Origin: Selaginella moellendorffii
Taxonomy: Eukaryota > Plantae > Lycopodiophyta
Assembly: GCF_000143415.4 (NCBI RefSeq)
Contig: NW_003314278.1
Coordinates: forward strand, 388,371-452,370
Length of the DNA stretch: 64,000 bases
Reading direction: 5' to 3'
Position numbers and translations under genes: made by a program. The notes beneath the pieces are model-generated. The model was not told where the DNA came from, searched no databases, and saw only the letters and a list, made by a program, of their open reading frames with translations. Of this stretch, positions 281-52,309 are shown piece by piece. Within the stretch, counting starts at the first letter, position 1, and each line of letters begins with the position of its first letter.

Positions 281-3079
281 ATGGCAATGGCGGAAGCGGC
301 CGCTACTCTTCCAGCAGCGAAGTTCCCCTCTTGCTCATCGATTTCTTCGGTCGCCGGGAACTCGCAAGCGAGATTATGCTGCGGCGCCAGATCGAGAGCG
401 CCGTTTGTGGGCCTCCGGGGCTTTCCAGGGCTCAGATTTTCAGGGCAGAATGGCGCGGCCAAGAATGCGCGGGCTTGCAATGCTGCGAGGCGTGGGATTG
501 TGTGTATGGCGGCTTCCGGTAAGTCTTTTGTGATTCTACATAGCCAGCTATGGATTTTTGTCATCGAGATTTTTCTTGGTTCCTTTGGATATGGTCGGTC
601 GTGCTATGAGTTGCAATTCATTGGCATCTTGGTTTATAGATTTTACGCGAGCATCATAGTCATATCCTCTATCACGAAGAATTTTCTTTGTGTTCTTGCA
701 AATCTACGTAGCTATAGCACGGAAAGAACGTTCCATAGTTTTTTTTTTTTTGTGTGCTTGCTTCTATCAAGAAAATATTTCTTTTCATACAATTCATACT
801 TTCTCTGGTTGCTTACATTCGAATTTATTTTCTCACACAGATACACGAGAGTTTCCACTCGAGGACTACCGAAACATTGGAATCATGGCTCACATCGACG
901 CTGGCAAGACTACAACAACCGAGCGCATTCTTTACTACACCGGCAAGAACTACAAGATCGGCGAAGTTCACGAAGGAAATGCGACCATGGACTGGATGGA
1001 ACAGGAAAGAGAACGAGGCATTACTATAACTTCCGCTGCCACAACCGCCGTGTGGAAGAACCATCGGATCAACATCATTGACACTCCGGGGCACGTCGAC
1101 TTTACTCTTGAGGTGGAACGAGCTCTCAGAGTTTTGGACGGGGCTATTTGCCTCTTCGACAGCGTTGCCGGTGTGGAGCCACAGTCAGAGACCGTGTGGA
1201 GGCAGGCTGACAAATACGGGGTGCCGAGGATCTGCTTTGTAAATAAGATGGATAGGATGGGAGCCAATTTTTTCCGGACGAGGGACATGATCGTCAGCAA
1301 CTTAGGAGCCAAACCGCTGGTACTACAGCTTCCGATAGGAGCGGAGGATACATTCAAAGGGGTGGTCGATTTGATTACCATGAAGGCTATTTTGTGGAGC
1401 GGAGAACAGCTAGGTGCGAAGTTTAGCTACGAGGAGATTCCCGACAACTTGGCAAAGGACGCGAAAGATTACAGGGCACAGCTTGTCGAGCTGGTGGTGG
1501 AACAAGACGATGAAGTTATGGAGCAGTACTTGGAAGGAGTGGAGCCGGATGAAGCAACCATCAAGAGACTTATACGGCAGGGAACGATCTCAAACAGCTT
1601 TGTCCCAGTTCTTTGCGGATCGGCATTCAAGAACAAAGGTGTGCAGCCTCTGCTGGATGCGGTGATAGAGTTTCTTCCTTCTCCAGTGGAGTTGCCTTCG
1701 ATCAAAGGGACTGACATGGACGATCCGGAGGTCGTTCTCGAGCGAAAACCATGTGACAAAGAACCATTCTCGGGGCTGGCCTTCAAGGTGATGACAGATC
1801 CTTTTGTTGGAGCACTGACGTTCATGCGGGTCTACTCCGGCGTTCTCACGGCCGGATCTTACGCCCTCAATGCGAACAAGAACAAGAAGGAGAGGATCGG
1901 GCGTCTGCTCCAGATGCACGCAAACTCACGGGAAGATGTCAAGGTTGCAGTGACTGGAGACATCGTAGCTCTCGCTGGTTTGAAGGACACGATCACAGGG
2001 GAGACGCTGTGTGATCCAGAGAAGCCAGTGATCCTGGAAAGAATGGACTTCCCTGATCCCGTCATCAAGGTGGCAATAGAACCAAAGACGAAGGCTGATG
2101 TCGACAAGATGTCAACTGGCCTTATCAAGCTTGCGCAAGAGGATCCGTCGTTCCATTTCTCCAGAGACGACGAAACAAACCAAACAGTCATCGAAGGCAT
2201 GGGAGAGCTCCATCTGGAAATCATCGTTGACAGGCTGAAACGGGAGTTCAAGGTTTGCTTCGAGAATTCGCTACAAGATTGTGGTTCTAAAGTCTTTTCT
2301 GATTCAGGTGGAAGCTAACGTGGGAGCTCCACAAGTGAACTATCGCGAGAGTATCTCCAAGCCAACTGAGGTGAAGTACGTACACAAGAAACAGTCAGGA
2401 GGACAAGGCCAGTTCGCAGAGGTTGTGATTAAGTTCGAGCCACTGGAGCCTGGCAGCGGATACGAATTCAAGAGCGAGATCAAAGGTGGAACCGTTCCCA
2501 AGGAATACGTTCCGGGGGTGGTGAAAGGCCTCGAGGACAGTATCAGCAACGGGATCCTGGCAGGCTACCCGGTGGTGGACTTTCGAGCAACCTTGGTCGA
2601 TGGTTCTTACCACGACGTCGACTCCAGCATCCTGGCGTTCCAGCTCGCAGCTCGGGGAGCTTTCAGGGAGGGGATTCCCAAAGCAGGGCCCAAGCTTCTG
2701 GAACCAGTGATGAAGGTGGAAGTGGTGACACCGGAGGAGCACATGGGAGACGTGATCGGAGACTTAAACTCGAGGAGAGGCCAGATCAACAGCTTGGGAG
2801 AGAAGCCCGGTGGCTTGAAGGTAAGGCTGGTTCTTCTCACGAATCTTTCGCTTCATAGCGTTTTTCTCTGGTGAGAGTGAATCTAAGCTCGGTTTGCTAT
2901 GGTTCCAGGTTGTGGATGCGTTTGTTCCACTGGCGGAGATGTTCCAGTACGTGAGTAATCTCCGAGGAATGACAAAGGGACGAGCAAGCTACTCGATGCA
3001 GCTCTCCAAATTCGAGATCGTGCCACAGCATGTCCAAACGCAAATCACCTCCAAAGCTCAAACAGTCGCTGCGGCCTAA
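281..3079 (+). CDS. fusA: Plastid translation elongation factor G (nuclear-encoded, transit peptide); exons 281-518, 841-2252, 2308-2820, 2909-3079
   Basis: GTPase motifs [22 protein letters not shown] and NKMD; EF-G domains III-V ([29 protein letters not shown]). Ser/Ala/Arg-rich N-terminal exon resembles a transit peptide. All introns are GT-AG and keep the frame. Confidence 0.96.
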
Positions 3080-3242: not shown

Positions 3243-6170
<2,928 letters not shown>

Positions 6171-6875
6171 GTCTGTGGTGAGTGAATCTGTGAATCTTCG
6201 AACTCTTTTTAAAGCGCTTTTGTCCGGCAGGATGACAAAACGGACGATGGAGTTTCCAATGGATGGAGTGTCGCTTAACACTAACGTAGGAATTAAGGTG
6301 TTGTAATCCCTCTGGTCTTTAGTTACGTATTATTTGTTGACTTATACACTAGGGACGAGATGGCAGGGAGAAGCACGCACACCGCCTTCAAAAGCTTCCA
6401 ATACTAGAGGTGAAAGCTACCATTCTCTTGTGTGATTTGTCGCAACTGACCAATCTTATTTTTTTCTCAGTCTCAGGGAAAAGTACGCACGTCGTCAACT
6501 GTTGTATACGAGTGGTGAGATATTTTTCCGCAGAATGAAAGTAAAGTAGAAATGATGGCCCGAAAACCATAGCTTTTTACTTCGTTCTCTCAAGAGAAGT
6601 TCTAAAAACCAAGGCTTCTTTCTTATAAGCATTTAAGCGGCAGCGACCGAGACATCTCCAAGAGACGATCCAGCTCTGCTGCTGAGGGCTCTCTGAGAGC
6701 CTGAGCTCCTCACAGTTGCTTGAGATATGTCTAATTGAGTTGTAATTTGGTTTCTCTTAGGATGTTAGATTCTCCTTCCAACCATCCTTGGTGACTGGCA
6801 CGTACGAGGAGATGAAACGCTTTGAAAAGATCCAAGGGAAGTGTCATTGAAGAGTGTCAAACCGGATTGAAAAAT

Positions 6876-6930: not shown

Positions 6931-8207
6931 TCGAGTTTGATGTCTACTGAAAACTGTCTGTCTATAGTGGTCGCAGCGACCGTGAGAATCCAAGGTACAC
7001 AGACGATGCAGCAAGGCCGGCGTTTCCTCCCGGGAATGATACCAAGATTTTCCTTTCTATGGCGTGGAACGAACCGATAGCAATGGGGTCCTCGTCATAA
7101 GCTCAAGGGAATCCTCCGAGAGACACCGATAAGATATCTACGCCGTCATCGATGGCAGGCAAGGATGCCGTCGCTGGGACAACCGAACAAGAAACAAACT
7201 CTGTACGCTGCAACTCTGCAAACTCCTCCTCTCGCTGTTCCGGCCCCCAGTCCAAACTCACTCACTTGAGGAACTAGAGTTCCGGCGATGGTGGAAGTTG
7301 TGTGTGTCCCGTGCCCAACTTCGTCCCTCGCGTTTATGAAGTTGCAATAGATCATGTAGTTGCGAGCTCCAATCAACTTCCTGCTGGACAAGTTATAGAT
7401 CTTCTCTAAAAGGTGAGCTCGAAATTTACTTGTTGCAGTGAATGAGCTCTGATGCATTGGTGACGCCTTTGTTGTTACAGGTTCCTTTCCATCGAGCTGG
7501 TACCTCGCTCATCCCAGCATCGGAAAAGCTCTTGGATTCAGGCTATATCCTTGTCATATCACTCACGAGTAAGTTCTTGGAGAGATCTCATGGCCGACTT
7601 GAGCTGATTTTATACCTGTGTCTACAACTCCAACGATAACATCAGCTGCTGGTAGCGAGTTTTTGGATTCATTCTTGGAAGGAATTGTTACGTTCGGCAT
7701 TCCAATGAAATCCCACGAGTGCGTCGTCTGGAGTTGCAGCATTCTATTTGGAAAGACCTTGACAACACCCGGTGTACCTGCTTTCACTCTCCAAATTAAC
7801 GAGATCTTCACTCATCGAGGTAAACTTGATTTATTACTTGAAAGAATCTCGGCCTGGTCTTCCGTAAGCCATGCTGAGAATTCAGTGAGCGCCATCTTGT
7901 AGGTGAATCCCATCGCTTCCCAGGATTCGTGCAAGCATGCTAGCGAGTGACGAAACAACTGTGGCAGAATCCACATCCTCTCTCTTCCCTCCGGTGTATG
8001 CGATATATTTCTGTCGAAGGAAAACGAAAGGCAAACAAGTTGTTCTCTTCCTTACGAGTGGGATCATCATAAACTTGCCTGCTTGTCTCCAGCTTTGGGC
8101 TCGGTTCTGGTACTGTGGAGCTCGCCATCGCCGGTGTGGAAGGAAGCATCACTTTGACTAGCAATTGCTGCCAGTAGCATTAAGCACACGGCAACGATGG
8201 AGTCCCT
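6931..8207 (-). pseudogene. Tandem subtilase duplicate, truncated and frameshifted
   Basis: Colinear with 4825-6170 (TTHSWDF, VGVVDTG, GHGTHTTST). The start ATG has become AGG, there are several indels, and it ends before the catalytic Ser at the tRNA fragment. Confidence 0.88.
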
Positions 8208-8681
8208 GTTTGTGGTGTGTGAATCTTGTGGGATGGAATCAGTTTCTTTTGAACTGCTCGCCAAGGAATTCCAGAGTATCGGAGAAAATGTAACAAAATT
8301 GCTGCGTTCCTTCGTATGCGACATTTTACATGTTTAGTACTGTTTCTAATCTAGTGTTCATAAAGTTTCCAAAAGTATAATTTGCTGGCTGTGACACCCC
8401 CCTTAGACCACTCGGGCAAACCAGCTTATCGCCTTAGGATAATTACATTAAAGGGTTGGAGCATTCGCCTTAGCATAATTACATTTCGGGATAGCATTCC
8501 GGCTGCAACGCATTCCAAATCCACATCAATTCGCTTACAACGTGTTTGTTGTTGATGATGTGACCTCCCACCAAGTCCGCAAAGTGAACAGTATAGAAGT
8601 CTATAACTTTAAAGCCCACCTCTACTATCCATAGCTGCGCACTCTTTCTTGAGCATTCTTTCCCTTCTTATCTGTTCTAGG

Positions 8682-9950
8682 ATGGCAGCCACCGTCACAA
8701 TTGTTGGCAATGCTTATGTGTACCCAAGAGAGGGGTCCAATAGTTTCGGTTCTATTTCTGAAGCCGGGCTTGGAGCATGGACAGATGTCACTGGATCTAC
8801 CCGTGTCTACTTCTGGCCACAGAAAACTGGGTCGATTTCTGTTTCAATCAAGGCAAGATCTGTTGACAATACTAACACTTTGCGTTTAAGTCTCGATGGT
8901 AGTGCCAGTGCTGCACACGACGTAGTCCTGCCCAAGTCCTCTAATTTCCAAACTTATACAGTAGGAACATACACCATTTCGAGCTCAAGGTATCACTATC
9001 TGGAGATACGTGCAGTCACCAAAAACTCAATCTACCTTCCTGATGTGCAAGCACTGGTCATCTCTGGTTCTGCTGCCGAAGGCCTCAAGTATAACAAGAG
9101 CTCCTTCCGCGGTGCACCCTCAACGCATCTTTCGTACAAAACAGAGGGTATCGAGGGGGGTATCACTTGGTTCTACACTGAAATCTATGTCAAGCAAGGC
9201 GAAGATCCCCTTTACTCCTACTACATGACGAATGGTTTTGGAGATGGCTACTTTGGTATTCAGGTAAGTTCCAGTGTAATTGCATTATCCACTTCCTAAT
9301 ATTCTTATCATCTATAGGTGAACTCACCGACTGAAAGGAGAGTATTATTTTCAATATGGAGCAACTATGATACTCAGAAACCAGAGGAGATCCCCGAAGA
9401 CTACAAAGTGAAGCTGGTGAAAAAAGGAAGTGATGTGATTTCAGGAGAATTTGGTAACGAAGGGTCGGGTGCACAGAGCTACTTCAAATACATGTGGAAA
9501 ACTGACACCGTTTACAGATGCCTTGTCAAGGCTGAAGCTTCTGGTAGCGACAACACCATATTTTCAGGTTACTTCCATATGCCGGAGTCGGGCTGGAAGC
9601 TGATAGCTCGATGGAACAAACCAAAGACTGGAGCTCTCTTGTTGACAGGGCTTTATTCCTTTGTGGAGAACTTTTCAAGCAATGGAAACGACTACTTCAA
9701 GGCTCACTTTGGCAACCAGTGGGCTTATGGTAAGGATGGATGGGTGCAGCTGACCAAGGCCGGATTCACCACGACCGCCAGTGAAGAGAAGCATCAGCGA
9801 TATGATTATGGCGCTGGGGCAGAAGGCGTTTGGATGTATATGTATAGTGGTGGATTTAAGCAGACGAACAATGTGAAGGCTGGAGATATCATACAAAGGA
9901 GCGGTGGTCCTAGTCCTGATGTGGACTTGAAAAAATTGGATGCTCTCTAA
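8682..9950 (+). CDS. DUF5077 + DUF3472 domain protein (Bacteroidetes-type family); exons 8682-9263 and 9318-9950
   Basis: Family-typical motifs RGAPSTHLSY, WFYTEI, SYYMTNGFGDGYFGIQ|VNSPTERRVLFSIWS, GEFGNEGSGAQSY, LYSFVENF and FGNQW. A 54-nt phase-0 GT-AG intron joins the two ORFs. Confidence 0.88.
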
Positions 9951-10064
9951 AAACTAAAACACCACCGCAGTTAAATAAAAAGAAAATAACAACAGTTTAT
10001 TGTATTACATGCACGATCTAAGCATCCACTTTGCCAACGATGACACATCAAGGTTTGGCGCTTA

Positions 10065-10412
10065 CATCGCGTGCTCAAGTGCTCGTTGAGAATGGTTCGC
10101 TCTTTCATGGAGTTCTATTTTTCTCTTCTTTTTTTGAGCTTGCACTTCGCTTGACAACGATTCTAGGTGGAAAAAAATCCCTCTCTAGTTTACCTCTTTA
10201 CCTCGTGAGCTTCACGTTGCCACACGGATTGAAAAAGATAGCTGGTCTTGGAGATGATTGTTGTCTTTCCATCGAGCTGGTACTTCGCTCATTCCAGCTG
10301 AATTAAAATGACTATAGATGCCTTAGGAAAAAAAACGTAACCAAGCTTGTTTCCAGCTTTGATCTCGGCTGTGGTACCTTGGAGCTTGCCATCACCGATG
10401 TGGAAGTAAGTG
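10065..10412. pseudogene. Scrambled fragments of the helicase 5' exons (~10065-10245, +) and of the subtilase (~10263-10298 and ~10345-10412, -)
   Basis: Degenerate matches to 12764-13011, 5415-5447 and 6035-6100. Confidence 0.7.
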
Positions 10413-10464
10413 CGACAAATGGCCAGAGACCAATAAGCATACGATGCGAAGCCTACGCGCATTA

Positions 10465-10683
10465 TGCTTTATCAATAAAAAATTGAAGTTTTAGCTTTAT
10501 AATTTATAAATTAAAAACTTTTCATATGATTTTGTGTTATAATATTGTGAAATATAAAAAATAAATTAAAAAACTGATAGAAATATTAATAAATATTAAT
10601 TAAGTACTAGGAAATGGCATGTGGACACATGCTAATTAATGTCCCACTTTACTGAATAAGTTCCACTTTAACGAAATAAAGCA
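10465..10683. mobile_element. MITE copy with most of the left TIR deleted (same family as 37887-38171)
   Basis: About 210 nt nearly identical to 37961-38171. It starts TTA|TGCTTTAT and ends with the intact right TIR AAGTTCCACTTTAACGAAATAAAGCA. Confidence 0.8.
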
Positions 10684-10820: not shown

Positions 10821-11291
10821 TTAGAGAGCATCCAATATTGGGAAGTCCACGTCAGGATCAGGACCAACGCTCCTTTCTATGACATCTCCAACCTTCACAT
10901 TGTTGGTCTGCCTCAGATGGACATCTCTTGAAGAACCAGAGATGATCAGCGCTTGCACCTCAGGAAGGTAGGTTGAGTTTTGGGTGACTGCACGTATTTC
11001 CAGATAGTGATACTCTGGTATAAGTTCCCACTGTATAAGTTTTGACTTGGGCAAAACTACGTCGTGTGCAGCATTGGGACTACCATCGAGGCTTAAGCGC
11101 AAGGTGTTAGTGTTGTCAACTGATCTTGCCTGGATTGAAACAGAGATCCATCCAGTTTTCTGTGGAAAAAAGAAGACACGGGTTGATCCAGTGGCATCGG
11201 TCCATCCTTCAAGGCCATCATTAGAAATAGAACCGAAACTGTCGTTTGGGTACACGTAACCATTGCCAACAAGAGTGACGGTGGCTGCCAT
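10821..11291 (-). CDS. Inverted paralog of the DUF5077/DUF3472 gene retaining only DUF5077 and the C-terminal tail (156 aa; possibly a pseudogene)
   Basis: MAATVTLVGNGYVYP...ALIISGSS is joined in frame to QTNNVKVGDVIERS...LDAL*. The whole DUF3472 region and the intron are absent. Confidence 0.7.
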   Translation of the reverse strand: MAATVTLVGNGYVYPNDSFGSISNDGLEGWTDATGSTRVFFFPQKTGWISVSIQARSVDNTNTLRLSLDGSPNAAHDVVLPKSKLIQWELIPEYHYLEIRAVTQNSTYLPEVQALIISGSSRDVHLRQTNNVKVGDVIERSVGPDPDVDFPILDAL

Positions 11292-12387: not shown

Positions 12388-15300
12388 ATGGAGGAGGCGG
12401 GCAAAGGCGCACGAAGAGGCGGAGGAGGCGAGATGCTTGTAAGTGGCCAGGAGCGCAATGCAAGAGATTGCGCTATCGCTGGATGTGATCTTTGATGTGA
12501 TTGGAAATTCCAGGGCCTCGTGCTTTCACGCCGCTTAAATGTGGAGCATTTAACGATTTCGAGCGCTCTGCTCGCGGATGTAAGTTCTTGATTTCGTGAT
12601 CTATACACTCCATACGATTTCTTCTTCGTGTTTGTAGTTCTTCCTTCCTGCGGATTCTCGTTCGGGTGGTGCAAAATGCAGGTGCAATCTTCGACTGGGA
12701 AATCGATCGAAGCATCCACTTCTGCCGCCGATGAATCGTCGAGGTTTGAGACGCTTTCATCATGCGTGCTCAAGTGGTCGCTGGACAACGTCGAGAATGG
12801 CTCGCTCATTCAGGTGAGTTGTTTTTTTTTTTTCTCTTCTTTCTTTGAGCTTGCACTTTGCTTGACAAGGAAGATGGTGTTCCAGGTGGGAAAAATTCCT
12901 CTCGAGTTTACCTCTTTGAGGCAGTATCTCGCGAGCTTCAGGTTGCCGCTACTCGAGGAAGTGCGAGAAGGATTAAGCCGCGGCCTCTCACGGATTAAAA
13001 AAGATGGCTGGGCTATGGTACGAGTGGAGATGGAAGACACAGACGAAGCGCTTCGACGGGTCTGGCTCAAGGTGGACGGTAAAGACAACTCCTCTTTCAA
13101 GCCAATGGATGTTGTCCTACTCGCGACAAGCCCAACTTCCTCCGCGAAGGACGTGCAAGCTTCGGGAAAGATGCACGCGCTGGTTCTACTGACCGGCTTT
13201 GATGTTCCAACGGGCTTTTGGGAGGCCGAGATGTACTCCACATCCCAGATGGAGAACGCTCTGACTGATCCGGAGAGAAGCTGGTACGTCATTGGCTTGG
13301 AGTCGCTGGTATCAGCTTCGAGGATTTGGAATGCGTTGCAGCGGCCGCTGTTTGCCGATGAAAATCGGTTCCCGATTTTCGACGAGGTGCTGCAACAGGT
13401 ACCTAGAGAATTTTTCTGTCACTGAAGTTACGTATTTTTCGCTAACTTCATGTTTTCGTTTATAGGCACTTTGGGTGGATGATGCTGACAAAGGATTTCT
13501 TTCTGGAACAAGATGCTCGCATCTGAACGATTCTCAATCAAGGGCCGTGTCCAGCACCGTCTTGGCGCTTGAGAAAAATCAAAAGCCGTACGTGAGGCTG
13601 ATACAGGGACCTCCGGGTACAGGGAAAACGTCGGTGCTAGCCGCACTTCTTTCTGCGCTACGGAGCTCTGGAAGGCGTGTATTGGTTTGCGCTCCTACAA
13701 ACATGGCCGTTCAGGAACTAGTCACTCGGTTTCTGAAGACAAACGACTCCGGCTCCAATAATATTCTGCTCATGGGAAATGAGACAAGGCTGACTGGTGT
13801 TAGAGACAAGCCGCTGTCGGAAGTGTTTCTTCCATATCGCTTGAACAGGATATCGTCGACCTTAAGCCGCTGGAAATCAGAAGCGTCTTCCATGGTCGAC
13901 TTTCTGAATATGGAGGCCTCTCAAAACTTCTCGGACGTCGTACGAAGAAAGTTCGCCAGTCTTGAACAGCAGATGGTGCAGGCTCTTTCGGACCTGCCGA
14001 CCACACTCGTTCAGTCGGCTGAAATCGTCGAAGTGAAAAGCCTCCTCACCAAGATAAGCGATCTTATTGATGCTATTGCTTGCTTTGGTGTCAACAGGAG
14101 CATCAAGAACAACCTTGACAAACTAGCTGTCCTCCTTCAGAGCCTTCAAGTGAGTGCTGACCGCATGACGAGCTTCATCAGAAGGCAGCTCGTCAGGCAT
14201 TCGACCATGGTGTTTTGCACGCTGTCTTGCGCTGCTATGCCGTTGGTGCAAAATTCGGCGGTGCCTTTTGACGTAGCTGTTCTTGACGAGGCTTCTCAAG
14301 CTATCGAAGCGGAAACAGCTATCATTATGGGCCTTTCTTGTCTAAAGCAACTCGTCCTTGTTGGAGACCACCGGCAGTTACCACCCACTGTTCTTAGCGA
14401 GGTACTTTTAACCGTGCAAACTTCGTACTGATTCGATGCCTGTATGTGTTTACAGAAGTCTAAAATGTCCGGTTATGGAAGGAGCTTGTTCCAGAGGCTC
14501 CATGCGCTGGACCACCCGAATATTATGCTTAATGTTCAGTACCGCATGCACCCATCTATTTGCCAGTTCTCAAACTATGAATTCTACAAGCGAAAAATCC
14601 AAGATGGCCCGAATGTAACAGTGAGTTCTTACGGCGCAGCGTTCCGCTCGCTCTTATACGGCCCATATATATTTATCCATGCGAACAGTTCGGAATGCAC
14701 TGCCAAAGAGGGGAGCTTGGAAAATCCCACGGAAATTGAAGTCATCATGTTTCTATTGGAGAAACTCCAAAAAGGTACACAAAGAAGCTGGCTGAAAATT
14801 CTAAGATGTGATTTTCCAGAGAAACTAAACTGCAGCAACCTTGAGGTGGGAGTTATCTCCTTTTACAAGGCACAAGTTACTGCACTAAGCAGTCGCATAC
14901 GACATGCTTCGTTTTCTTTCAAGGTCGAGGCCAATACTGTCGACGGATTTCAAGGTCGTGAAATGGACGTAGTTATTTTGTCGACTGTCAGATCGAACCC
15001 TTCCGGAGATTTGGGCTTTCTGAAAGATCATCGACGTCTGAATGTTTCAATAACTCGAGCCAGGTGGTTGCCATAATGTTTGAGCCTCTACTTACTTTTT
15101 CCCATGCAGATACTGTCTTTGCATTGTTGGTAACGAGCATACCTTGGCTAAGAACGAGACCATTTGGAGGGATTTAGTTCAGAATGCAAAAAGCAGAGAT
15201 TGCTTTGTGGACTCGGCCGACGTTCCAGAGCTGGAGAAGCGTGTTGGAGGCAAAGTGGACCAGTTTTATGATATCCTGATTAACAGTTCTCTTCTCGAAA

Positions 15301-18300
15301 ACTGTATCTGGAAGGTGAGTGTCCTCATCGGTTTTCTTGCCTACCTGAGCATGTTTTTCTCTTTGCAGGTCTTCTTCAGCAAGGAGTTCAAGACCAGTTA
15401 CGCTCGTCAATCGGCGTCCTTCAGAAATGGCTGCACGAGATTTGTCCTGGGACTTGCTAGAGGTCACTGGCCTGAGTTGAACTCTGCGATGCCGCTGACA
15501 CTCTCAGAGGATATTCACGTGTTTCGCATGAACGGTTTGCTTCTAGTCTGGAGAGTGGTTTTGACGAGCAATAGAAGGTCTCAGGTCATCGAGCTATGTG
15601 ATGTGGTGGGCGTTCAAGGACTACAGCGAATTGTCCAACGATTGAATACTGTCAGCTCGACTTACTCATTGGATTACGTGGAACGCTGTCGAACTATGAC
15701 GACAAAGACGTCCGTTTGCGGTAGAATCGCTGTTCCGGAAGTATGGAGTGGAGATGTTGTCCAGAAAGTCATCGACGACGGCAATGCAGCGCCTCCAATT
15801 AGTCAGCCTGGTCCCAAAGTTTCAGAGAATCTATCTCAACTGAAGTTCTATTCAGAGTCATCTGGAATTGCGAACTACGTTCTGACAGACAGTGGCGGTA
15901 CAGAAGTCGAGCTGCCGTTCCCTCTAAGTCGTCCACAGACCGAGCTGATATTGTCTTCTTCGTCGGCTTTTGTTATCGGAAGGTCGGGCACAGGCAAAAC
16001 CACGGTTATCAGTGTTAAGATGATGCGCATGGAGCAGCTCCATCGCATATCAAGGTGTGGTTTTGGTGATAACGGGAGTTTTGATAGCGCCGAGGGGACG
16101 TGCTTGCGTCAAGCGTTCATTACCGTTAGCCAGAGGCTGTGTTTCGCGGTCAAGAACTACCTCGAAAAGTTTAAAAGGTATGCGACGAACTCCTGTTACT
16201 CATCAGCGTCACCAGTTTTTCTTACACTTCAGGTCTTTACTACGAAGTGATGCTTATACTGCTGTTCTTGGGGTCACCTGCAACGAAGATGTCATGCTTG
16301 ACGAAGAGTTTCAAGGCGGCATTCCAGACAGTTTCATCAACATCCAACCTGAGGCCTTTCCTCTCGTCTTGACCCTCAGAAAGCTTTTGGATATGGTTAA
16401 TGGAACTGTGTCGAGGCCTTTCCGAAGCAGAACACTTGAAGACCGGGAAGTGGACTTCGACGTCTTTGTGTTGGTTTACTGGCCGCGTATGAAGGCCTCT
16501 TTGAGGAAGACGTACGATGCATCAGATGTCTACGCGGCTATCGTGTCTCACATCAAGGGAAGCGCTGAGTCCCTTCACTGTCCGGACGGAAGGCTTTCTC
16601 GCGAGGCTTTCGTCAACTTGGCATCACAGCGTATTTCGGTGTTCGATGAGGGGCAACGGGACACGATCTACGACCTCTATCTCCACTACGAGAAACTCAA
16701 GAAAGAAAACGACGACTATGACATGGCAGACTATGTTTGGCATTTGTACCGGCAGCTCAGGGTGGACGGGTTCAAGGGAGACAAGCTTGATCTTGTCTAT
16801 ATTGACGAGGTGCAAGATTTTACGCTGGCTCAGGTATGCCTGCTCAAGTTCGTATGCACGAATTATCGGGAAGGCTTCATTTTTGCTGGAGATACGGCTC
16901 AGACCATCACTAGAGGTGTGGAATTCCGGTTTGAAGATGTACGTCGGGTTTTCTATACAGAGTTTCTGGAAGCCGAGGCGAGGTGTCCGGATATCGTGCA
17001 GCTGATAGACAATTTCAGGACAACGGGCGCCATTGTCCAGGTTGCAAATAGTGTTATGGAGCTGATACTTCGGTTCTTCCCTCTCAGGGTCGACAGGCTC
17101 GAGCCGGAAAGTAGTTCTGTGCTCGGCGAAGTTCCAGTTGTTTTGAATCTCCCGGACGATAGCACATCTATCAACTTTTTGTTTCAGAGTCATGGATCCA
17201 GCTCCGGTTACGAGTTTGGCTCGGATCAAGCCGTACTAGTCCGGAACAAGTCCCAGAAGCAGCAGCTGCTAAAGGAACTCGGCACAAGATGCCTCGTCCT
17301 TACGGTGGAGGACAGTAAAGGATTAGAGTTTGAGGTAGGCTTTATTTTCTTCTAACATGCTCTAAGCTACTCTTACACAGGATGTATTGATCTTTAACTT
17401 CTTCACTGACTCGGCAAGCCCTGAAGCGTGGAAAGCACTTTCTTCTGTTTTTGGTAGAAGCCGTCCAGCTAATTGTTTACCTCAGCTTCCCAGGATTTTG
17501 TGCAATGAACTCAAGGAGCTATATGTTGCCATCACGAGAACTAAACGGAGGCTGTGGATCATCGACGAGAACCTGGAATATCAGCGGCCAATGCTTGATT
17601 ACTGGAAGAATCTGAACGTTGTCAAGAGAGGTGCGTTGGATGCGTCACTGATATCCTCGATTCACCAGATAAGCTCCCCCGAGCAGTGGCACCAACGTGG
17701 TGTTGAGGTAAATATCTGTGTAGTGGATTCACTCTTTAAACAACATGTATTGGCTGGTCTGTGTAGATGTTTAATGCTCGCCGGTTTGACATGGCAAAGC
17801 TTTCCTTCAAACGAGCAGGCGATAGATACCGAGCAAAACTATCTGAAGCTGCGGAATTTCAAGAGAGGGGAGAAAAATTCCTTAGAGTCGACGAGAGTGC
17901 TGCAAAAAGGGACCTACAACGTGCGGCCGCACTGTACGAGTCCCTGGAAAAGAAGGACGCTGTAGCAAAGTGTTTCAGATTGATGAAAGACTTCCAAAGG
18001 GCAGGTACTGTGATGAATAAATCTTCTCTCTCTCTCTCGTACTTATACTGATTTGTTGTGTAGGTTTTTTGTACAAGCAATGCTCAAAGCTAGAACTCTC
18101 GGGAGACTGCTACATGGCCGCAAATCTCCACAGCGAAGCTTCACAAGTATATGCGGAGGGGAACCATTACGAGAAATGCCTTGAAGCTTGTACCAAGGGA
18201 AGACTGTACAAAGAAGGCCTCGACTTCATTCGCAAATGGACAGTACCAAGCGTGCCTGCCAACACGTTGGAGAAGTTTCGGAAGAACGCTGCCGAGTACT

Positions 18301-20818
18301 TTCATCGCAAACTAGACGCTCACTCGATGATGGAGGCGGTGCAAGCCTCTTCGGATGCGGACTGGAAGATTGCGTTCTTGGAAAGAAGGGAGTACCTTGA
18401 CGAGCTTATCGAGCTTGCATGCAGCCTTGGCAACTTCGAGAAAGCTGCAGAAGTGGCTGCGAGGAAGGGAAACGTGCTCCGAGCATCGGAGCTACTCGAA
18501 AATGCCGGCAAGCGTTCCGAAGCGGCTCGGAAAATCCTCGAGCACATCAGGCTCCAGTCCTTGTGGGGAGGACAAAACTGTGGCTGGCCTCTGAAGAGTT
18601 TCCAAGACCGTGAGACTCTCGACAAGGCGGCACGTCTAGCTGCTGACAACCCCGTGTTCTCGCACGAGCTCAAAGTGCTCCGGACGACCACAGGCACTGC
18701 CACAGTGAGAGAGCTCCTGGAAAACTGGAAGGTGGCGAAGAACTCCAACGTCGAAGTCATTGCCTTGCGGCAGCTATTGGGAGGGGCGTCCGAGGCCTTG
18801 AAAGCAGCAGCCTACTCGTTTGAGCTCGATTCCGAGCGCTCTGGCTTGACGCTCGTCCAGGACAACGTCGAGAACTTGCTACAACTCGTGCTCTCGGCTT
18901 GGAACACCTGGTTTCAATGGATCCACTCCGTGGTGCAGTCTCTCGATGGAGTTCAGGATATGTTACCACGGGGAACTGCGGTTTCAGCGGCTTTGAACTA
19001 CCTGGGAATCAGCCGAGACATGAATCCCAAGCTCTGCATTGTGGAGTATGTTGGAGCTTTCTGGCTCCAAAACGAAACAGTCAGGCCGCTTTACAGTGGA
19101 GGCAGCAGGGGCCAACACAGGACCGAGCGAGTAGCATCACTCGCGAAGAAGTTTTTGGAAGAGCAGCTACTAGAGTCGGGGCTGGACTGCATCCGGAGTT
19201 TGCACAAGTGCAGCGAGATTTCTTCAACACAATCGAGAGTAACGCTCGTTATCCTCGGCTTGCTCGAGAGTCTTGCCACTGTCCTGGATAGCCATCAGGA
19301 GAAGCTCCAACTAAAGCTCCAGGGATACAGAAGGCTTCTCTACAATGTAGCGTTTCTCGGGGACGCGCAGAGTTTTCTCGACGTATCATCCATTTGCCAC
19401 GAGCGTTTCTTCACTGCGCACTTGGACCGCGTTGCAGGCGAGCAGAGCTTGGATTTTCTCGACAACTCCAGCGAGGTGCGGGGAACTCTGCGCGTTCTCT
19501 TACCGTTTCTGAGCGCTCCAAAGCTCGAGACGTTGAAGCGACACCTTCCAGAAGACATGGCTGGCTTGGCAACGTCCTACTCGCGCAGCAACCATCGGTG
19601 TACTCCTTTCGAGTTCCTGGATTCCGTAGTGAGGCCGTCAGTTGGATTTATCGGCGATATCATCACTAAGGACGTCATTCCAACAGACTTCATCAGGCCG
19701 CAATTCTATCTGCTGGAGAGAGCCACGGTGCTGAGCTTGGCTTGCTTCACGGGCCTGGAGCAGATGGTCCTTCCGGAGAGCCTGGCTTTCAAGTTTATGA
19801 CTGGAAGGCCGCAGGAACAGGTGCTCTCCAAAGTTCTCGAGCTGATCAAGCCCCCTGGAGAGGCCTCTGCTTGCGCCTGCCTCAATGCCATCGGCAGGAT
19901 TTGCATCTCGTTGCTTCTAGGAAGGCCAGACTTTTTCGTGGAGTGGCTGCGCAGGAGCAGCAAGCTCGTTCTTGAGCTGGTGAAAGTGCTCCTCACACTC
20001 ATGCTGGCGGGTATCAGAGGTAAACTTTTGGAGTGCTTACGTTCTCCCGTTCTGGACGTGCTGCCTTGGGAGATCAAGCAGAAGTTACAGGAAACGGTTT
20101 CTACGTCCAAAGTTCTGGAAAAAGACCTGTTGGAGCTCATGGCGATAACAGGTGATCCTTTCCTCGTCTTGATGCGTCGAAGCGGTGGTCACGATAATGT
20201 ACTGCGACGTGTTGGCATCGAGCCTTCTCCCGGAGTTTTCAGCTCGAAAGGTTTGCAAGCCACGAGCTGTGAGCGGACCGGGAACTGGTCGAAAAAAGAC
20301 GAGGCACTGGTTGAGTTGCGAGCAAGTATGAAAGGAAAGAAGAAGGAAAACGAGTACCTCCGCGAAGCGAACTCAGTGTTTAGCTCACTCGGTTTGAAAG
20401 ACGACAGCTTTTACGTTCGAGACTTCCTCACCACGGCGTGCCCGCTCAAGGCATGAGTTTTATATCCTTTTTCTTTTCGATTCTTTTGAGAACTCTTTCT
20501 TTCCTGCAGGCCTCCGCGGACGATTTTCTACTCGACTTGAGCTCCGCGATAGAAATAATGAAAACGGGACTCGGTATCAGGCCAAAGCAAGAAAAAGCCC
20601 GGTGTTTGCTTCAAAACATGATCCTGTACCACGGCAAGCTCGAGTGCATGACAACGCTTCTAAATCCCAGGGACGCCAGACACGAGCTCCTCGACTTGGC
20701 TGCTCTGCAAAAATCAGTCCAAGCACTGCGAGAGAAGCTCGAGAAAGGGAAGAAACTTCTGGGCGACCACGTCAAAAGGCTGCTAAGCAATCGCTGGGAC
20801 TTGCGAGAGTGGCAATAA
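12388..20818 (+). CDS. TRANK1/LBA1-like double SF1 helicase: DUF6469-like N-terminus + SEN1/UPF1-type helicase (AAA_11/AAA_12) + UvrD-like helicase + TPR-like repeats; multi-exon. Start uncertain (12388 or 12676)
   Basis: Helicase 1: GPPGTGKT, DEASQ, VGDHRQLPP, QYRMHPSI, TVDGFQGRE, RLNVSITRAR. Helicase 2: GRSGTGKTT, DEVQD, AGDTAQTITRG, NFRT, SKGLEF, ELYVAITRTKRRL. Ala-rich helical repeats follow. Short introns join successive ORFs. Confidence 0.9.
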
Positions 20819-49746: not shown

Positions 49747-50703
49747 NNNNNNNNNNNNNNNNNNNNNNNNNNNNNNNNNNNNNNNNNNNNNNNNNNNNNN
49801 NNNNNNNNNNNNNNNNNNNNNNNNNNNNNNNNNNNNNNNNNNNNNNNNNNNNNNNNNNNNNNNNNNNNNNNNNNNNNNNNNNNNNNNNNNNNNNNNNNNN
49901 NNNNNNNNNNNNNNNNNNNNNNNNNNNNNNNNNNNNNNNNNNNNNNNNNNNNNNNNNNNNNNNNNNNNNNNNNNNNNNNNNNNNNNNNNNNNNNNNNNNN
50001 NNNNNNNNNNNNNNNNNNNNNNNNNNNNNNNNNNNNNNNNNNNNNNNNNNNNNNNNNNNNNNNNNNNNNNNNNNNNNNNNNNNNNNNNNNNNNNNNNNNN
50101 NNNNNNNNNNNNNNNNNNNNNNNNNNNNNNNNNNNNNNNNNNNNNNNNNNNNNNNNNNNNNNNNNNNNNNNNNNNNNNNNNNNNNNNNNNNNNNNNNNNN
50201 NNNNNNNNNNNNNNNNNNNNNNNNNNNNNNNNNNNNNNNNNNNNNNNNNNNNNNNNNNNNNNNNNNNNNNNNNNNNNNNNNNNNNNNNNNNNNNNNNNNN
50301 NNNNNNNNNNNNNNNNNNNNNNNNNNNNNNNNNNNNNNNNNNNNNNNNNNNNNNNNNNNNNNNNNNNNNNNNNNNNNNNNNNNNNNNNNNNNNNNNNNNN
50401 NNNNNNNNNNNNNNNNNNNNNNNNNNNNNNNNNNNNNNNNNNNNNNNNNNNNNNNNNNNNNNNNNNNNNNNNNNNNNNNNNNNNNNNNNNNNNNNNNNNN
50501 NNNNNNNNNNNNNNNNNNNNNNNNNNNNNNNNNNNNNNNNNNNNNNNNNNNNNNNNNNNNNNNNNNNNNNNNNNNNNNNNNNNNNNNNNNNNNNNNNNNN
50601 NNNNNNNNNNNNNNNNNNNNNNNNNNNNNNNNNNNNNNNNNNNNNNNNNNNNNNNNNNNNNNNNNNNNNNNNNNNNNNNNNNNNNNNNNNNNNNNNNNNN
50701 NNN
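49747..50703. other. Assembly gap (957 N)
   Basis: Run of n characters. Confidence 1.
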
Positions 50704-51229
50704 AAGCAAAGGTGACTCTTACAAACTAGATATTGTAACACATGTTTTTTGTAGTGATGATTATTATTAATAATTTCATTCCAATTCAATAAGATGCTTA
50801 TGATGAGGAGTTGGAGGAACTCTCATCGACAATATATCATATAATGGTAGCATATTTTTTGTTGTTTTTTTCATTCACTTGGCTCTATTTAATTCTGTCC
50901 TATTTCTCCAATAGCGCATTGAGGCACTATGGGTGTCTTTGTTGACTCCTATAGTAGATTACTAACACCTTTCATAGAAGACAATATGAATATGGACATA
51001 AAGTACCAATTTAACTATTAGTGTTAAATGACTCTAACTGGATCTATAAGCTTATAATGTATGCAACATATATTTGTTATGTCATAGCTTTTGCATACTT
51101 GGAAAGACTTCCAAAGCATCCAGTTTTAGAAACTACAACTGATTATAATCTATAAAACAAAGTATTAAAATTTTAATAAATATAATTTACATTCTTGAGG
51201 TTAAAGGCATCTTATGAAATCCTTTGAGC

Positions 51230-51410
51230 TGGCATTTGAAGAAATTATGTTCTTTAATAACAAACACTAATTTACTAGAGTCATGTGCTACCTTTACCAT
51301 AGAACCATTACCTACTGTGTAATCAATCACAACATCATTTAATGAGCAATAGAGCTTAAATAAAACTTGCATCAATGATGGAGTTTGAAATTGGTACCTA
51401 GGAAACGTGT
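51230..51410 (-). pseudogene. Degenerate N4/N6 DNA methyltransferase-like fragment (SAM-binding region)
   Basis: QFQTPSLMQVLFKLYCSLNDVVIDYTVGNGSMVKVAHDSSKLVFVIKE resembles QKPxxLxxxLIxxxSxxGDxVLDPFxGSGSTxxAAxxxGRxxIGIE. Confidence 0.4.
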
Positions 51411-52309
51411 TGCAAATTTGCTTATGCACATGGTTGGGTATGGAATTGTTATACTCAGGCAAAACATATGTTGCACACTCACTTTCATGAAATTAACCAT
51501 ATGTATTTCTATAGAAGGCATGCTAAATCCACATCATAACCTAGAAAATAAAGAGTTTAGAAATTCCATTTGCCTTAGACACCCTTAGTATCAATGCCAA
51601 TATGATTCATGATGCATCTAGAAGAAAATAACTTCAAATAAACTTTTGAGTTTTCTTGATAAAATACTTGCAATTAAATTCAGTTAAATAGTTCATCCTA
51701 TATCTTCTAACTATAGTGATCTTAGTGGTTCCTATACTACACTTTTAGTTTATTGAATGATAACTTAATTGGAATACTCTTTTGTTCTAATATAAGAGTT
51801 ATTCACTATTAATTTGATATTTCTAAAATATCTTTGTTTATGACTTTAATATTATCCATTTTATTGTTCTTGAAGTTTGGGCCAGTATATGCAAACTAAC
51901 TTCAACACTTCGTATATATATAAAATATTTAGTCATAGGATAATTAGAATTGACTAGTCACATAACTCACTTGTTCCTATTTCCATTAAAAAGGCATGAC
52001 TATATAAACAACTCTAATTGTTTGTTTATAGTAGTCTATCTAAACTTTATTGATAGGTTTATTTTATATATTCAAGAAGGTTAGGTGTTTTATCACTTAA
52101 AAGTAAAAATACATTAACTTTTATAAGCTAGGTGATACCTAAAATAGCAAGGGTGCTCTATTGGTCATTTCCTTGTTGGTGATGGCTAAAAGGTATTTGA
52201 GTGCTAGCATATTTTATGTAAATAGAGATAATTCTTTAACTCAATTAAGTTGGTAAATTTCTTAATGTCTTCATTGACCATTGACTAATAATCCCTATTG
52301 AGCTAAGGA

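Follow-up and report, generated by a model that had tools for sequence, protein, structure and literature searches.

Introduction

Among the closest described relatives of proteins that join a DUF5077 (PF16871) to a DUF3472 (PF11958) domain is BACCAC_02064 of Bacteroides caccae (PDB 4QHW/4QHX), whose 4QHW entry is titled 'putative two-domain sugar hydrolase' with no assigned activity and therefore gives no function. HC7 of Bacillus cereus, the only enzymatically characterised DUF3472 protein that we found, is a di-glutamate mucinase that cleaves mucins carrying Tn and T O-glycans, according to PMC13003899, which cites Narimatsu et al. 2024 Nat Catal 7:386. The newer Pfam label for PF11958 is BPSS1860, and BPSS1860 is a Burkholderia surface protein required for attachment to host cells (PMC7998038). 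DUF3472 proteins, with or without DUF5077, have moved repeatedly from bacteria into eukaryotes, as set out in a centipede venom study whose tree includes Streptophyta (Undheim and Jenner 2021, PMC7864903). Here we describe a DUF5077+DUF3472 gene of the lycophyte Selaginella moellendorffii, located at positions 8682-9950 of a 64,000-nucleotide stretch of contig NW_003314278.1 (hereafter the window). We argue that it was probably acquired from a Chitinophaga-like bacterium and that it encodes a putative two-glutamate hydrolase.

The plant protein shares its two-domain architecture with BACCAC_02064 over the full length, together with all of the invariant residues; the two differ in that the bacterial protein is secreted or lipidated, whereas the plant protein has no leader. 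The centipede venom proteins belong to the same family, often carry DUF5077 as well, and according to that study (PMC7864903) have a bacterial origin, introns and a history of duplication in the host. They are secreted, whereas the plant protein lacks a signal peptide, and the centipede and other animal members stem from independent transfers, the springtail and rotifer sequences branching away from Selaginella. In work on antibacterial gene transfer across the tree of life, a bacterial GH25 (glycoside hydrolase family 25) lysozyme gene is reportedly resident in S. moellendorffii; that is the same kind of event with another family and another donor.

Results

A spliced plant transcript

The coding sequence, as read from the window, starts with the ATG at 8682 and yields a product of 404 amino acids (aa). 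Four sequencing runs from four studies each contain one contig of 1288-1361 nucleotides (nt) that matches the gene with 0 mismatches, spanning approximately 8578-10007, and each of these four contigs skips a single 54-nt GT..AG stretch, exactly 9264-9317. The contigs begin at 8578, 8616, 8642 and 8657. There is no ATG within 8578-8681, so that 8682 is the first ATG of the transcript, and an in-frame stop codon lies upstream of 8649. One contig (run X1) stops at 10007 with A6 followed by Illumina adapter sequence, which therefore marks a poly(A) site, and the other contigs stop at 9957-10000. In these four runs the 5' flank of the gene has no contig cover, and beyond the 3' end there is trace depth only (4 or less). 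The gene stretch is present in 20 listed sequencing runs, mostly with about 0.62-0.72 of its words, and transcripts were found in at least 16 runs from 7 studies. The RNA status of the runs is an automatic guess; the contigs lack the intron, lack the flanks and end in poly(A), as mRNA gives. These results show that the locus is a transcribed, spliced and polyadenylated nuclear gene. Run X7, which carries a different organism code, contains the same spliced transcript with 0 mismatches; its source is a very close relative or the same species listed under a different name.

We searched the exons separately, not joined, and later took the public protein (P0351) as the full-length reference. This protein consists exactly of the exon 1 translation followed by the exon 2 translation and is a 404-aa product of S. 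moellendorffii listed as SELMODRAFT_441509, XP_002971429.1 and UniProt D8RK59. The sequence is therefore not undescribed, as it is annotated as hypothetical in GenBank, RefSeq and UniProt.

The original prediction, made from the letters of the window, had proposed a 404-aa protein with a 54-nt GT-AG intron inside the motif GYFGIQ/VNS, and both the frame and the boundaries proved exact, with the family profile continuous over the splice and the predicted 54-nt excision found precisely in transcript contigs from the four studies. The lycophyte origin was likewise confirmed by the exact match to XP_002971429.1, and the surrounding genes are ordinary plant genes as stated, encoding elongation factor G (EF-G), a subtilase and a superfamily 1 (SF1) helicase. 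The absence of a signal peptide also held, since translation starts at the first ATG and the model places residues 3-14 in strands of the first domain.

A full member of the two-domain family

Profile searches against Pfam placed both predicted domains above their cut-offs. Exon 1 matches DUF5077 at aa 5-131 (nt 8694-9074; 75.2 bits against a cut-off of 24.6; profile positions 1-121 of 122) and then enters DUF3472 at aa 138-194, where profile positions 6-61 score 58.9 bits against a cut-off of 24.8 and the match ends at the last residue of the exon. Exon 2 takes up DUF3472 at profile position 63 and continues to 268 of 269 (223.5 bits, E 5e-66). Because the exon 1 match runs to position 61 and the exon 2 match starts at 63, the family profile is continuous over the splice, far beyond chance. 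A weak CBM_35_2 match is also present in the protein, and neither exon 1 nor exon 2 matched any NCBIfam entry.

An alignment of 80 diverse sequences, with a mean identity of about 32%, defined 15 family-invariant residues: G185, Y190, G192, Q194, F205, W208, F239, G240, E242, G243, G245, W254, F309, E311 and D357. All 15 are present in the three Selaginella proteins, namely the window's product and the related SELMODRAFT_407289 and SELMODRAFT_407288 (96% and 79% identical, respectively). The plant protein is a full member of the DUF5077+DUF3472 (4QHW-type) family, as had been predicted by the domain assignment.

Selaginella proteins nest within Chitinophagaceae

An exhaustive HMMER search with exon 2 returned 799 cluster representatives, the top identities being 55-56% (a rotifer fragment and a Puia metagenome-assembled genome). 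With P0351 as the query, a word search gave 2850 matches, and we considered the best 120. These are led by the Selaginella copies (96% and 79%), followed by the full-length proteins P0306 (63%) and P0311 (61%), then by Chitinophaga niastensis, C. nivalis and other Chitinophaga at 55-59%, and by Puia, Hanamia and Ginsengibacter at about 49%. P0306 and P0311 were taken to be Bacteroidota because their contigs carry SusC/SusD, LacI and major facilitator superfamily (MFS) genes. Among these 120 matches no bacterial protein exceeds 63% identity to the plant protein, and neither they nor the fragment matches include a named plant other than S. moellendorffii.

We built trees from 346 rows with FastTree, from 93 rows with a quick IQ-TREE run, and from 43 rows with a careful maximum-likelihood analysis (LG+C20; support given as UFBoot/SH-aLRT), rows having been dropped from the last set for size and not by result. 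In the 43-row tree the three Selaginella proteins group together (100/100) inside a 15-row Chitinophaga clade (100/99), which lies within Chitinophagaceae (95/92, then 100/100) among other Bacteroidota, and the 346-row and 93-row trees have the same topology. The horizontal acquisition put forward in the original prediction is thus upheld by the phylogeny, with Selaginella three levels deep inside Chitinophagaceae. The ancestry of the gene is bacterial, and the sequences support a bacterium-to-plant horizontal transfer with an origin in Bacteroidota. We call the donor Chitinophaga-like, as closer naming is not supported by the sequences.

Other eukaryotes with scattered members of the family are centipedes, a springtail, a rotifer and ciliates. 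In the 93-row tree the springtail sequences branch elsewhere and the rotifer groups with Panacibacter; because they branch apart from Selaginella, eukaryotes have gained the family several times, in agreement with the centipede study. The supplements of the centipede paper (PMC7864903) contain no occurrence of Selaginella.

Relatives are encoded at 589 of 600 sampled bacterial genome loci. The alignment scan of genome contigs covered at least 600 stretches, of which 80 loci were kept; the closest Chitinophaga genomes fall outside the 80, and the close relatives named above come from the protein search. A genome-contig scan with exact peptide patterns of the plant protein returned no relative. 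Base composition at third codon positions (GC3) is not diagnostic of origin, with 0.49 for the gene, 0.57-0.65 for neighbouring plant genes and 0.57-0.62 for bacterial relatives.

SusC/SusD genes adjoin the gene in 5 of the 7 bacterial loci that we inspected. On the two Logan contigs that carry the closest bacterial relatives (L001 and L002), SusC/SusD pairs are accompanied by either a LacI-type regulator or MFS transporters. The flanks examined on L001 and L002 contain no recognisable glycoside hydrolase, so that the target glycan is not evident there.

Leader loss, intron gain and selection

Bacterial relatives carry about 40 additional N-terminal residues that form a lipoprotein leader, with MK, a hydrophobic stretch and a lipobox cysteine (for example ...LLLAACAK...). 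A secretion or lipoprotein leader of this kind is the rule among bacterial members, though it does not enter into the Pfam definition. The plant proteins lack it, their MAATVT start coinciding with the first strand of the domain, and in the structural model residues 3-14 already form strands. The intron lies at the identical site in all three complete Selaginella copies and measures 54, 54 and 60 nt.

Exon by exon, the ratio of nonsynonymous to synonymous divergence (dN/dS) is 0.28 between 441509 and 407289 (dS 0.058) and 0.40-0.48 between 441509 and 407288 (dS 0.23-0.27). The comparison of the truncated second copy in the window with 407288 gives 0.80. We propose that an ancestor of S. moellendorffii acquired the gene from a Chitinophaga-like bacterium (Bacteroidota, Chitinophagaceae), and that in the plant the leader was lost, one short intron gained at a CAG/GT site and the gene duplicated tail-to-tail and kept under purifying selection.

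Structural model and putative mechanism

An AlphaFold2 model computed from the 80-sequence alignment has a predicted local confidence (pLDDT) of 97.3 and is all-beta with two domains. The model shows a beta-sandwich like that of carbohydrate-binding modules (CBM) of families 6 and 35 for DUF5077, followed by a beta-jelly-roll for DUF3472. Its best match is 4QHW (Z 49.2, TM score 0.89, root-mean-square deviation (rmsd) 2.1 A over 389 residues, 38% identity; profile E 3e-161). Three entries deposited as 'DUF3472 domain-containing protein' (8PMU, 8PN3 and 8PN5), which are HC7, match residues 143-403 of the model (Z 28-29, rmsd 2.3-2.7 A over 239 residues; profile E 8e-12). CBM35, CBM6 and CBM36 modules match residues 1-130 (Z 14-16), in keeping with the weak CBM_35_2 match in Pfam. 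Glutamic peptidases (neprosin, scytalidoglutamic peptidase and CPAVM1) and GH16 glucanases follow with Z 13-14.4 over 170-194 residues, and GH16, PL7 (polysaccharide lyase family 7), laminin G and neurexin are among the weaker fold matches. The glutamic peptidases, that is the eqolisin/scytalidoglutamic peptidase and neprosin groups, and GH16 share the concanavalin-type jelly roll; there is no sequence relationship, and the resemblance is one of fold only.

Wild-type 8PMU reads LFQEDW where the Glu200Ala mutants read LFQADW, and in the profile alignment this sole difference coincides with E311 of the plant motif FVENF (nt 9666-9668). E242 in FGNEGSG (nt 9459-9461) aligns with HC7 E131 in FGGEGTG, so that the glutamate of the common FGxEGxG motif is conserved; both E242 and E311 are encoded by exon 2 and are invariant in the 80 diverse members. 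HC7 and the plant protein thus have the DUF3472 jelly-roll catalytic domain and Glu200/E311 in common, and E242 is the putative second catalytic glutamate.

Two statements of the original prediction need revision in this light. Its description of the family as uncharacterised is outdated, given the HC7 structures, the di-glutamate mucinase activity and the BPSS1860 label. Its suggestion of a GH16/PL7/lectin-like fold comes close, the fold being a jelly roll with GH16 and PL7 among the weaker matches, but the best functional analogue is a glutamate-dependent glycopeptidase.

In the donor lineage the homologues are lipoproteins whose leader is cleavable, and they are often encoded next to SusC/SusD, which import glycans through the outer membrane; the leader and these neighbours together point to a surface protein acting on a glycan or glycoprotein. 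The SusC/SusD adjacency would fit a surface enzyme or a binding protein that feeds the glycan importer. By extension, the plant product would be a soluble, CBM-guided hydrolase of glycoconjugates with a two-glutamate acid/base mechanism (E242 and E311), and it would cut either glycopeptide or glycosidic bonds. Lacking a signal peptide, the product would act in the cytosol or would not meet its substrate until the cell is damaged. That it is catalytic, what class of substrate it acts on, where it is located and what role it plays are inferences, and a plant role in defence or glycoconjugate turnover is speculation.

Discussion

The best explanation of the locus as a whole is a gene acquired horizontally from a Chitinophaga-like bacterium that encodes a putative two-glutamate hydrolase, and we give this reading a probability of roughly 0.75. 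Several points weigh against it. The node that parts Selaginella from the twelve Chitinophaga-type rows has a support of only 83/85. The absence from other plants is drawn from the best 120 of 2850 matches, and the published tree contains unnamed Streptophyta. 4QHW, the solved member with the DUF5077+DUF3472 architecture, is a structural-genomics entry only. HC7 is 19% identical to the plant protein (single-sequence E 0.002) and has a different architecture, with 659 aa, no DUF5077 and other accessory modules (CBM5 according to PMC13003899). The second catalytic glutamate is deduced from conservation. The published account of BPSS1860, which is tied to the family by the Pfam label, describes an adhesin and not an enzyme. 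A cytosolic location, moreover, puts classical extracellular glycoprotein substrates out of reach. The substrate of HC7 is animal mucin with Tn/T O-glycans; the plant protein may work like HC7, without being a member of the HC7 subfamily.

The alternative with the strongest claim concerns the date and route of the transfer: the gene may have entered the plant lineage long before S. moellendorffii arose, in an event common to at least one deeply diverged eukaryote, or may have reached Selaginella by way of that eukaryote. It arises from protein P0353, a eukaryote-like relative encoded on the Logan contig L083 (1-1853, SRR17638753), which is 60% identical to the window's protein, has no leader and begins MATQSDSSNLNTVTLY. 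P0353 falls in the same 15-row Chitinophaga clade of the 43-row tree, and the flanks of its contig are AT-rich, non-coding and repetitive, with a GC content of 0.39-0.41 against 0.545 in the coding part. A second Logan contig, L084 (1-1485, SRR6920682), is about 95% identical to L083 and contains a net 75-nt GT..AG insert with stop codons right after the GYFG codons, 1-2 nt from the Selaginella intron site. The start of this insert matches the Selaginella intron at 14 of 16 bases, a score reached by 25 of 2000 shuffles. A clade of Selaginella and P0353 was not rejected by the approximately unbiased (AU) test (p 0.131), and P0353 has 5 exclusive residues in common with the Selaginella trio, where bacterial members have 0-3 each. 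In the free trees of 93 and 43 rows, however, P0353 joins Chitinophaga sequences and not Selaginella. Because dS between Selaginella and P0353 is saturated, an old likeness between the introns should not have survived, and the similarity may be due to chance or to constraint on splice signals; CAG/GT is also a proto-splice site, at which independent intron gain is plausible. P0353 and L084 would reflect either an old acquisition that another lineage shares or a parallel transfer in which an intron came to lie at this proto-splice site too, and we judge the older, shared transfer to be a serious possibility that falls a little short of even odds. The 5' flank of L083 also contains two to three direct repeats of approximately 60 nt each.

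The main functional rival to a two-glutamate hydrolase is a purely binding role, in which the protein would be a non-catalytic binder of glycans or surfaces, lectin- or adhesin-like as BPSS1860 is, and the glutamates would serve binding. The attachment function of the protein that gives PF11958 its label (PMC7998038) speaks for such a role, as do the CBM-like N-terminal domain and the many concanavalin-type jelly rolls that are lectins, including those behind the laminin G and neurexin matches. Against this, all 80 sequences share the two glutamates and 13 further residues without variation, a pattern typical of an active site, and one of the invariant glutamates corresponds by alignment to HC7 Glu200, the catalytic residue. 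BPSS1860 could also be an enzyme despite its attachment phenotype, and it is tied to the family by label only. We therefore consider a binder unlikely, though worth keeping in mind.

It is less probable still that the gene is a transcribed but functionless, decaying relic. The secretion signal has been lost, and one copy on this haplotype has no catalytic domain and evolves under relaxed constraint (dN/dS 0.80). The open frame, however, is intact in three copies that retain all 15 invariant residues, with dN/dS of 0.28-0.48, and the transcripts recur across studies.

Vertical inheritance from an ancient eukaryotic or plant gene that was lost in most lineages, with transfer in the opposite direction, would account for the scattered eukaryotic members and for the 'Streptophyta' in the published tree. 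We regard it as very improbable, since strongly supported bacterial clades at genus and family level enclose Selaginella, the other eukaryotes tested fall in different parts of the tree, nearly all of the sampled bacterial loci (589/600) encode relatives, and the ancestral leader of the bacterial proteins is missing from the plant copy. The soil Bacteroidota among the nearest relatives and the overwhelmingly bacterial make-up of the family might point to bacterial contamination or misassembly, but splicing of the transcripts and collinearity with a second haplotype refute it. It has next to no credence left given the GT-AG intron removed from transcripts in four studies, the poly(A) end, the plant genes on both sides, the identical gene order on a second scaffold (95-98% identity; three copies with the intron in all), and the ceiling of 63% identity to any bacterial protein among the best 120 matches.

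What the locus adds is a clean case of a bacterial gene turned into a working plant gene, with an intron gained, the leader lost, the gene duplicated and purifying selection at work. Its donor can be named to genus level as Chitinophaga-like, a common rhizosphere group. The independent uptake of the family by centipedes (as venom), springtails, rotifers and others suggests an unusually useful stand-alone tool. For determining the activity of the 4QHW-type subfamily, the plant copy offers an easily expressed, signal-less, single-chain member. The type of event is already known, both as bacterial genes in plants and as repeated DUF3472 transfer into eukaryotes, no long-standing question is opened, and the gene is already in public catalogues. 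Our literature search found no paper on this plant gene itself. The contribution made here is the genus-level donor affinity, the verified transcript structure and the link to the di-glutamate enzyme class. The original prediction of an undescribed system therefore went too far on both words. The gene is annotated as SELMODRAFT_441509, has annotated copies (407288 and 407289) and belongs to a family whose transfers are published in PMC7864903; 'system' is too strong for a single gene, or a tail-to-tail pair. Overall, we consider the finding real, well supported and moderately interesting.

A more far-reaching conjecture is that Selaginella, and possibly a wider lycophyte lineage to which L083 and L084 would belong, has long kept an intracellular, CBM-guided di-glutamate hydrolase of bacterial origin. 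We put this forward tentatively and think it would more often prove wrong than right. If true, it would be the first plant member of an enzyme class that bridges glycosidases and peptidases, and it would act on a glycoconjugate beyond the reach of any native plant enzyme, for example glycoproteins of invaders or symbionts after cell damage, or cytosolic O-glycosylated proteins.

Copies and neighbouring genes

The 96% and 79% identical copies, SELMODRAFT_407289 and SELMODRAFT_407288, lie tail-to-tail on scaffold GL377571.1, where they are flanked by a subtilase and EF-G at one end and by a large SF1 helicase at the opposite end. Gene order in the window is identical (EF-G, subtilase on the minus strand, main gene, second copy on the minus strand, helicase), and the two sequences align collinearly with 94.8-98.5% nucleotide identity. 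GL377571.1 represents either the other haplotype or a very recent duplicate. Coordinates are collected in Table 1.

Table 1. Positions of the gene, its second copy and flanking plant genes within the window.
Feature	Position	Strand	Details
5' untranslated region	8578..8681	+	longest transcript contig begins at 8578
Exon 1, coding	8682..9263	+	582 nt, 194 codons; ends GGT ATT CAG/GTAAGT
Spliceosomal intron	9264..9317	+	54 nt, GTAAGT...ATAG, phase 0; Q194/V195 within GYFGIQ/VNS
Exon 2, coding	9318..9950	+	210 codons + TAA; remainder of DUF3472
3' untranslated region	9951..10007	+	to the poly(A) site; transcript contig ends
Second copy	10821..11291	-	156-aa open frame, counterpart of SELMODRAFT_407288, tail-to-tail; tblastn, blastn, translation
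EF-G	690-2874		plant neighbour
Subtilase	~4200-5300	-	plant neighbour
SF1 helicase gene	12600-20456	+	plant neighbour

What is left of the second copy in the window is a DUF5077-like N-terminal portion and the final 31 residues (tblastn: aa 1-130 at 84% and aa 371-401 at 94% identity to P0323). Approximately 790 nt are deleted, including the intron and nearly all of DUF3472, so that the catalytic domain is gone; at the same position GL377571.1 encodes the complete, 401-aa SELMODRAFT_407288. Trace-depth contigs at 10172-10547 in one run may be the 3' end of the second copy.

The helicase gene encodes AAA_11 and AAA_12 domains followed by a UvrD-like region, and is annotated on the other haplotype as a 1856-aa product. 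Long open frames with no Pfam match lie between and after these domains, for example at 15144-16250 and 18069-20456. Subtilase-related sequences at 4794-6189 and 6932-8455 are 78-88% identical to fn3_6/subtilase genes on the other haplotype, which suggests a partial tandem duplication of the subtilase upstream of the gene. Farther along the window, the first 36 kb are gene-rich with a G+C content of 0.43-0.54, and between 38000 and 54000 G+C falls steeply, reaching 0.19 at 50001-52000, with large swings in GC skew; this is probably a repeat- or transposon-rich stretch.

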